Origin: Phaeosaccion multiseriatum
Taxonomy: Eukaryota > Protista > Ochrophyta, other classes
Assembly: GCA_965112735.1 (NCBI GenBank)
Contig: OZ218955.1
Coordinates: forward strand, 3,844,001-3,908,000
Length of the DNA: 64,000 nt
Direction: 5' to 3'
The notes beneath the pieces are model-generated. The model saw nothing but the letters and a program-made list of their open reading frames with translations. It was not told where the DNA came from and did not search any database. A program made the position numbers and the translations under genes. Below are positions 48,901 through 50,874 of the stretch, one piece after another (position 1 is the stretch's first letter; each line of letters opens with the position of its first letter).

Positions 48901-50874
48901 AATGCTCCCTGCGGATGTGGGGAAAGTGGTTTGGTCACACAAAATATCAAGTGCAAGGGACGCGAACGGGTGTGCGTACCACTCACCGGAGAGCTGATTC
49001 TCCCTGATGTCCAGCACTGTAAGGTTCCGCAGACGCCCAAGCTCGGGTGGAATGCTCCCTGCGGATGTGGGGAAAGTGGTTTGGTCACACAAAATATCAA
49101 GTGCAAGGGACGCGAACGGGTGTGCGTACCACCTACCTTCTATGTTGTTGTAGCCGAGCCACAGTTCCGTTAAGTTCTGAAGACCTCCAAGCTCCCTTGG
49201 AATGATCCCTGCGGATGGGAGGTGAGTTCTTTGGTCACACTCACATCAAGTGAAAGGGGCGCGAACGGGTACGCGTACCACTCACCAATGAGCTTGTTGT
49301 GGGAGAGGATCAAACGCTCAAGCTTCTCCAGACTTCCAAGCTCCCTTGGAATGCTCCCTGTGGATGGGAGGAGAGTTCTTTGGTCACACTCATATCAAGT
49401 CAAAGGGACGCGAACGGGTGTGCGTACCACTCACCGGTGAGCTTGTTTTCGTTGAGCTGAAGTTCTTGAAGGTTTGAAAGCTTGCCAAGTTGCGGCGGAA
49501 TGCTCCCTGAGATGTGGGGAAAGTTCTTCAGCCATACTAATATCAAGGCAAGTCAAGAGGACGCGAGGTTGAGCACAATCAGGTTCTCAAGGCTTCCAAG
49601 CTCTGGTGGAATGCCCCCTGCGGATCGGAGGAAAGTTCTTTGGTCACACTAATATCAAGTCAAGGGGACGCGAACGGGGTACGCGTACCACTCACCGGTG
49701 AGGTGATTGCCACTGAGTTTCAGCACCTCAAGGTTCTGCAGACGCCCAAGCTCGGGTGGAATGCTCCCTGCGGATGGGAGGAGCGTTCTTTGGTCACACT
49801 GATATCAAGTCAAAGGGACACGAAGGGGAAGGGGACCACTCACCGGTGAGCTGATTATAGTAGATGTCCAGCAGCGTAAGGTTGTGCAGACGCCCAAGCT
49901 CGGGTGGAATGCTCCCTGCGGATGGGAGGAGAGTTCTTTGGTCACACTCATATAAAGTGGAAGGGACGGAAACGGGTTCGCGTAACACTTACCACTGAGC
50001 TTGTTCCTTTCGAGGTACAGTTTCTCAAGGTTCTGAAGATCTCCAAGCTCGAGTGGAATGCTCCCTGCGGATGGGAGGTGAGTTCTTTGGTCACACTCAC
50101 ATCAAGTCAAAGGGACGCGAAAAAAGTTGGGCCACACTGATGCCAAGTGAAAGGGACGCGGACGGACGGGTTCGCGTACCACCTACCTTCTAGGTTGTTG
50201 TTGTGGAGCACTAGTTCTCGAAGCTGTGGAAGCTGTCCAAGGTACGGCGGAATTCTCCCTGCGGATGGGCGGAAAGTTCTTTGGTTACACTCATATCAAG
50301 TCAAGGGGACGCGAAAAAAGTTGGGCCACACTCATATCAAGTGCAAGGGACGCGAACGGGTGTGCGCACTACTCACCGGTGAGCTGATTCTCCCTGATGT
50401 CCAGCACTGTAAGGTTCTGCAGGGCTCCAAGCTCGGGTGGAATGCTCCCTGCGGATGTGGGGAAATTGGTTTGGTCATACTCATATCAAGTCTAGGGGAC
50501 GCGAACGGGTGCGCTACCAATATCAAGTCAAAGGGGCGCGAACGGGTCGCTGGACTACCGCTGCCTCACCCCTTCTCTTCCCCCCTTTCCTCCTTCCCTT
50601 TTCCTTCTTTTTTTCTTTTCTACTACTACACTACTACATGATGATAATACTTCAGGACCTAAGGCGCAACAACTATTATCACGTCTCTCTCACCTTCCAA
50701 GCCGTTGCTAGCCAGCTCAAGCTTCACAACATAGTCATTTTCCAGGCTCACTCCGAACCAGTTCTCCAAAGGTGCGTCAGTGTTCCAACCAGCCTTGTTA
50801 GACCAAGCGGGTCCGCCCGTGGCGTCAAAGAGGGCTGTGAGTATACTACGCTGCTCTTGGAGGAAGCTAGACAT
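45967..50874 (-). CDS. Second one-LRR-per-exon gene or cassette reservoir, paralogous to 16688-18461
   Basis: ATG 50874, N-cap exon 50874-50694. Intact 72-nt exons start at 50448, 50258, 50064, 49915, 49767, 49506, 49357, 49208, 49058, 48908, 48757, 48608, 48459, 48311, 48162, 48013, 47863 and 47713. Truncated cassette 49617-49561; 141-nt double exon 47564-47424; second cap exon 47148-46960; then 46892-46812, 46612-46541, a remnant at about 46465, identical exons 46361-46290 and 46215-46144, and a 102-nt exon 46068-45967. Confidence 0.88.

Follow-up and report, generated by a model that had tools for sequence, protein, structure and literature searches.

The closest described counterparts of the genes discussed here are the LRR-ROCO genes of brown algae, including Ectocarpus, in which LRRs are carried by type I exons of 72 nt in phase 2 and the genes occur as clustered paralogues (PMC3341825, PMC11378527). 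"Inactivated exons" and alternative splicing have been reported for this family, and the mechanism of exon shuffling has been left open (PMC3341825, PMC11378527). Among 111 brown-algal ROCOs a COR domain was detected in just 18, and neither recombinant loci nor a recombinase are reported in brown algae (PMC11378527). The words palindrome, inverted repeat and conserved intron are absent from both papers (PMC3341825 and PMC11378527).

How LRR exons are reshuffled in brown algae and their relatives, where the products are candidate immune receptors, has been an open question since 2012. By analogy only, a cassette-built, diversifying LRR receptor with a short conserved non-coding motif adjoining each cassette recalls V(D)J recombination signals and the cassette copying of lamprey VLRs. 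Unlike those systems, the locus described below displays no rearranged DNA among assembled contigs, no spacer rule and no junction signature, and its motif varies and can be lost. A second precedent is microhomology-mediated deletion or replication slippage in tandem repeats, which leaves out-of-register junctions at 2-3 nt of microhomology or at a homopolymer run. The locus resembles such scars in that, apart from two nearby cases, cut positions are not conserved. It differs from ordinary tandem repeats in that its unit is an exon plus an intron, such that scars are buffered by splicing and the reading frame is unbroken.

The window analysed here, a 64,000-nt stretch of contig OZ218955.1 from Phaeosaccion multiseriatum, a relative of the brown algae and not itself a brown alga, is eukaryotic, with a G+C content of 53-66% and many microsatellites. 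It contains two paralogous receptor-like genes in convergent orientation, one at the left on the plus strand and one at the right on the minus strand. In both, one LRR corresponds to one phase-2 exon of 72 nt with a conserved 74-79-nt intron behind it, and 29 such exons were mapped across the two genes (Table 1). The left gene has an N-terminal exon ending near 16870 ahead of its LRR array; downstream of the array, a Roc GTPase (PF08477, E = 4.5e-16) was detected at 18593-21259, with a TIR domain at its C-terminal side in the same large 3' exon. No Pfam COR match at E <= 0.01 was found after Roc. A word search with the Roc-TIR exon returned three proteins, none of them from this genome; the nearest, 36% identical, is an unnamed Chrysoparadoxa australica product with the same Roc-TIR layout as the left gene. 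The right gene has its start codon near 50874 and LRR exons between 50448 and about 45966. Besides its N-terminal exon, this gene has a second, similar cap-like exon, followed by a second short LRR block (46960-47148 and 45966-46612, minus strand), and a degenerate LRR cassette lies inside 46540-46362. Both LRR blocks belong to one transcript, as a spliced contig joins 47565-47424, 47148-46960 and 46892-46809. The two right-gene ORFs that were scanned contained no Roc domain, and a 229-aa ORF further downstream (45191-45877) matched no Pfam family.

Table 1. Features of the two LRR genes and positions of their irregular units in the 64,000-nt window.
Feature	Positions	Strand	Evidence
Left gene LRR array: 8 cassettes and one irregular exon, then the Roc-TIR exon 18593-21262	17089..18461	+	
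Right gene LRR block 1: 18 intact 72-nt phase-2 exons with conserved introns	47642..50448	-	exon map
Long intron, 118 nt: model positions 1-56, T run, then 21-77	50259..50376	-	nhmmer, spliced contig
Long intron, 122 nt, same junction; tandem copy of the 50376-50259 unit with a 194-nt period	50065..50186	-	nhmmer, TRF
Long intron, 116 nt: model positions 1-45, T-rich filler, then 21-76	18274..18389	+	left gene
Right-gene first intron (245 nt) holding two partial intron copies that overlap	50449..50692	-	nhmmer, spliced contig
Broken LRR cassette: 57-nt exon remnant without donor, read-through to TGA	49561..49617	-	translation, alignment
5'-truncated intron copy after the broken cassette, starting within the right dyad half	49507..49566	-	nhmmer, alignment
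Putative composite intron, 189 nt, skipping the broken cassette	49507..49695	-	exon map
Recent left-right shared tract: 200 nt, 2 mismatches against 49945-49746	17356..17555	+	divergent flanks

The genes in the window are of the brown-algal type, a cassette design that has already been described, although membership among brown-algal-type LRR-ROCOs on the basis of Roc applies to the left gene only, because the two right-gene ORFs scanned are without it. The likeness extends to one LRR per 72-nt phase-2 exon, an array upstream of Roc, clustered paralogues, exon skipping, and cassettes with a lost splice site or a stop (49617-49561 and 46540-46362). Unlike their brown-algal counterparts, the genes have very short introns (about 77 nt) which are more conserved than their exons; in addition, the left gene ends in TIR while the right gene is without Roc in the scanned ORFs. 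Exons on the non-coding strand are frequent, though not obligatory, in brown algae. In this window no LRR cassette was found on the opposite strand, nhmmer having returned only trivial palindrome matches (E >= 0.11).

The 22 regular introns, each of 74-79 nt, yielded a clean intron model with a consensus of 77 nt. Consensus positions 10-27 read ACGCACAC-CC-GTTCGCGT, a quasi-palindrome, rich in CpG, at the intron's 5' end, which we refer to as the dyad. The half-site TTCGCGYCCC is near-ubiquitous in the cassette introns and occurs 25 times in the window against 0.22 expected; a match at 3571-3580 lies in unrelated sequence and was dismissed as a chance match. As a palindrome, the dyad is rarely perfect: 3 of 21 scanned copies pair at 8/8 positions, with the left arm ACGCGAAC, and the commonest form pairs at 6/8. 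The left arm is variable (GCACAC, GCGAAC, GCGCAC, GCGTAC) while the right arm is fixed, and the dyad therefore carries no compensatory change. A 10-bp hairpin is predicted in the perfect copies. We considered and rejected a conserved RNA hairpin at this site, since the prediction is confined to perfect copies (z = -2.5), against z = -1.0 in the commonest intron.

The substitution rate in the dyad columns is 0.095, against 0.11-0.19 in the rest of the intron. Small insertions within the dyad stretch were recorded in 50186-50065 (+4), in 17310-17385 (+1) and in two other copies (+1 in each), and about 5 nt were lost in 17606-17683; indels also occur at intron positions 44-50 and in the pyrimidine tail. 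In 49843-49768, its twin 17458-17533 and three block-2 introns, the dyad is gone while the rest of the intron and the neighbouring exons are intact. The first of these variants (49768-49843, minus strand), which both genes share (17458-17533, plus strand), holds six substitutions and one deletion over 17 nt in the dyad region; most dyad CpGs are gone and the remainder matches the consensus. The 5' intron halves of LRR block 2, taken up as candidate junctions near positions 21-27, were discarded on alignment, which resolved them as a diverged dyad region of unchanged length together with an insertion of 11 nt.

Mean pairwise identity is 79% among introns as against 64% among exons, in which third codon positions vary most. 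On these comparisons, the stronger conservation of the introns suggests either constraint on, or homogenization of, the introns, or diversifying selection acting on the exons. The related Chrysoparadoxa locus has the same 72-nt exon design, and its introns of about 90 nt are alike among themselves but different in sequence from those described here, the TTCGCG motif being absent from them; intron homogeneity is accordingly lineage-specific.

Five public runs contain the stretch in the form of Logan contigs. One of these, X5, stems from another sample and another study; its contigs include spliced ones, the joints of which have CT..AC ends on the plus strand and fall exactly at the predicted exon borders. 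X5 removes the 118-nt long intron whole (joint 50257/50376, skipping 118) as well as the 245-nt first intron of the right gene (joint 50447/50693). A further X5 joint, from 48239 to 48013 and with 56 nt on its shorter side, skips the LRR exon 48162-48091, in line with what has been reported on alternative splicing of LRR cassettes in Ectocarpus. In three DNA-like runs the contigs are collinear with the window, and no Logan contig, a product from which rare variants are dropped, bridges a rearrangement with at least 31 nt on both sides. Candidate somatic rearrangement joints in these runs had sides of 20-28 nt, short of what the tool requires for bridging, most with filler, and were attributed to paralogous cassettes or graph chimeras. 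Summed contig depth over the paralogous cassettes reached up to tens of times the baseline.

Several units depart from the regular pattern, and the earlier note had read them as scars of repeated breakage or strand exchange at the dyad. All the features it set out were found at the positions it gave. Three introns are, as it proposed, about 1.5-fold long with a second intron tail, measuring 118, 122 and 116 nt against the 74-79 nt of the 22 regular introns, and each contains a second, 5'-truncated intron copy. By nhmmer, their 5' parts correspond to model positions 1-56, 1-56 and 1-45, and the second copy starts at model position 21. All three align colinearly, and the junction string CTTTTTTCGCG has exactly three occurrences in the window, all in long introns, and none in shuffles. 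The two long introns of the right gene have in common not only the junction but the variant GTGTGGCCCAAC, and TRF reports a 194-nt period over 50027-50505, which upholds the proposal that this pair stems from a single event.

The kinship appears to reach the left gene as well. Two substitutions, C22 and C41, are common to the 5' half of 18274-18389 and to 50186-50065 and are present in 0 of 30 other copies. For comparison, of 231 regular-intron pairs just two, each an evident recent duplicate, share two or more private states. Because CTTTTTTCGCG and two private substitutions are shared, we regard the three long introns as copies of one ancestral junction. Judged from sequence, a single origin of all three is highly probable and an independent origin of the left copy correspondingly unlikely; our confidence goes no further because the left copy needs one extra change, namely a T-rich filler replacing 11 nt. 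The 3' tail of the left long intron and the exon that follows it resemble 47941-47792, which suggests that this intron is a mosaic formed by conversion.

The first intron of the right gene represents a different rearrangement. The two tandem motifs ascribed to it are indeed present, at 50548-50516 (model 15-47) and 50519-50449 (model 6-77), while the first intron of the left gene has only one copy, at 17023-17088. The junction, from about model position 46 to about position 6, lies outside the dyad.

The broken cassette was also found as originally described: the exon remnant reads, in cassette frame, GIPPELGSLENLIVLNL, then ASS, then a stop, running into CGCGTCC before the TGA. Relative to intact units it has a single gap of 41-43 nt, from about exon position 53 to about intron position 23, which takes out the last codons, the donor and the left dyad arm. 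Its tail at 49566-49510 corresponds to intron-model positions 22-73, and the intron copy to which this tail belongs contains a 5-nt internal duplication. The flanking exons 49767-49696 and 49506-49435 stay in frame across the composite intron of 189 nt, and across 49491-49661, the interval that includes the broken cassette, the spliced-contig depth of X5 ranks second-lowest of 30 bins. The broken cassette is most likely skipped inside the 189-nt intron, a junction which was not among the spliced-contig joints listed.

Assessing whether such scars recur at the dyad requires that copies related by descent be collapsed. Only two independent junctions at the right dyad half are then left, that of the long-intron ancestor (20/21) and that of the broken cassette (22-25), which lie 1-4 nt apart in the 8-nt arm. 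Other junctions and borders are distributed elsewhere: the 5' border of the array lies at about model 7-15 and its 3' border at about model 36, and homology in the intron that follows the irregular exon breaks off at about model 49. The chance that two of 4-6 junctions or borders fall within 4 nt of a 149-nt unit is P = 0.31-0.63. With the 8-nt arm taken as pre-specified, P falls to 0.016-0.037 for 4-6 junctions; if both ends of each junction are counted, it is about 0.1. Both junctions have microhomology. That of the broken cassette, at 49566, has TCG (3 nt) with a parent like 17238-17309 and otherwise TC, and that of the long introns is a T run; by chance, at least 3 nt would be matched at a rate of about 0.05 and at least 2 nt at about 0.16.

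Exchange tracts provide a further view of breakpoints. The shared tract 17356-17555 is the sole clear recent exchange between the left and right genes, and it ends at about intron position 47 and at exon position 22, not at the dyad. The ends of other high-identity tracts were rejected as breakpoints, since most coincide with the borders of conserved blocks (exon end plus intron 1-43, and intron tail plus exon 1-22), leaving the 200-nt tract as the only informative one.

Repeated breakage or strand exchange at the dyad, as originally proposed, is thus not supported in this one 64-kb sample, there being two independent junctions only, both with microhomology and no more than chance would yield unless the arm, which the earlier note had picked out in advance, counts as pre-specified. 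What survives of that reading is that the scars are real products of out-of-register deletion or duplication in the cassette array; their recurrence at the dyad does not. The earlier note had counted descent of all scars from one ancestral deletion as evidence against its reading, and the findings come close to this, with the long introns reducing to one event and the broken cassette being separate. Since the scars come from approximately two accidents, they do not show a cell cutting its DNA at the intron palindrome.

In our view the irregular units probably arose unprogrammed, as ordinary scars left when parts of a 149-nt tandem array were joined out of register, and phase-symmetric splicing buffers them. 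Their likely cause would be replication slippage or microhomology-mediated end joining. In one event, intron position 60 or thereabouts would have been joined to position 21 at the T run, through either the removal of an exon together with its flanks or a duplication of about 42 nt within the intron, and unit duplication and gene conversion may then have carried the product to its three locations. Another, independent event would have been a 41-nt deletion from about exon position 53 to about intron position 23 at TCG/TC, which killed one cassette, and in yet another about 37 nt would have been duplicated in the first intron. Splicing would tolerate these scars, long introns being removed whole, as observed for one of them, and the dead cassette presumably being skipped. 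The reading frame is kept when a cassette is skipped because every cassette is phase-symmetric, and splicing can thereby absorb deletions which would otherwise destroy the gene.

In one competing reading, the quasi-palindrome would be a preferred point of breakage or strand exchange which drives the loss, gain and shuffling of LRR exons. Such a hotspot, if true, would give a first hold on the mechanism by which exons are shuffled in candidate immune receptors of stramenopiles; the window offers none, its scars reducing to about two independent microhomology accidents, and we hold the proposal to be doubtful. Somewhat less doubtful, while still unlikely, is that the CpG-rich quasi-palindrome is an unprogrammed fragile spot, at which a transient hairpin or cruciform formed during replication raises the rate of slippage or breakage without a dedicated enzyme. 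The two independent junctions at intron positions 21 and 22-25, the small indels in the dyad stretch and the hairpin predicted for perfect copies all accord with fragility. However, perfect palindromes are in the minority and the commonest form leaves two of eight positions unpaired, substitutions are no more frequent in the dyad than elsewhere, indels affect positions 44-50 and the pyrimidine tail too, and two junctions are too few to count. The dyad might instead be a site for programmed, possibly somatic, site-specific recombination of LRR cassettes, with the scars as failed or half-completed reactions. The presence of the motif in nearly every cassette intron and the conservation of introns beyond that of exons could be taken in its favour, and, with the mechanism of exon shuffling left open in the literature, such a site would suit the somatic-recombination hypothesis of Zambounis et al. 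Against this, contigs from the DNA-like runs follow the order of the window and contain no rearranged form, neither end of the sole clear exchange tract lies in the dyad, both genes retain cassettes that have no dyad, the motif is not common to Chrysoparadoxa, no cassette in this window lies on the opposite strand, and recombinant loci or a recombinase are likewise missing from the brown-algal report (PMC11378527). We regard programmed recombination as very improbable.

The concern that some irregular units are artefacts of assembly, in which repeats were collapsed or mis-joined, arises from a repetitive array where many contigs fit two places. We give it the least credence of all, since contigs from four runs cover 50078-50315 with zero differences, splice joints in X5, an independent sample, fall exactly on 50257/50376 and 50447/50693 (the broken cassette is not among these joints), and the flanks have diverged between the three occurrences of the long-intron form.

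Among the many microsatellites of the window, several long ones were noted, namely (GT) with about 448 copies at 41548-42449, (CTC) with 124 at 11272-11642, (CTGT) with 131 at 12944-13469, and (CAGA) with 116 at 54106-54572.
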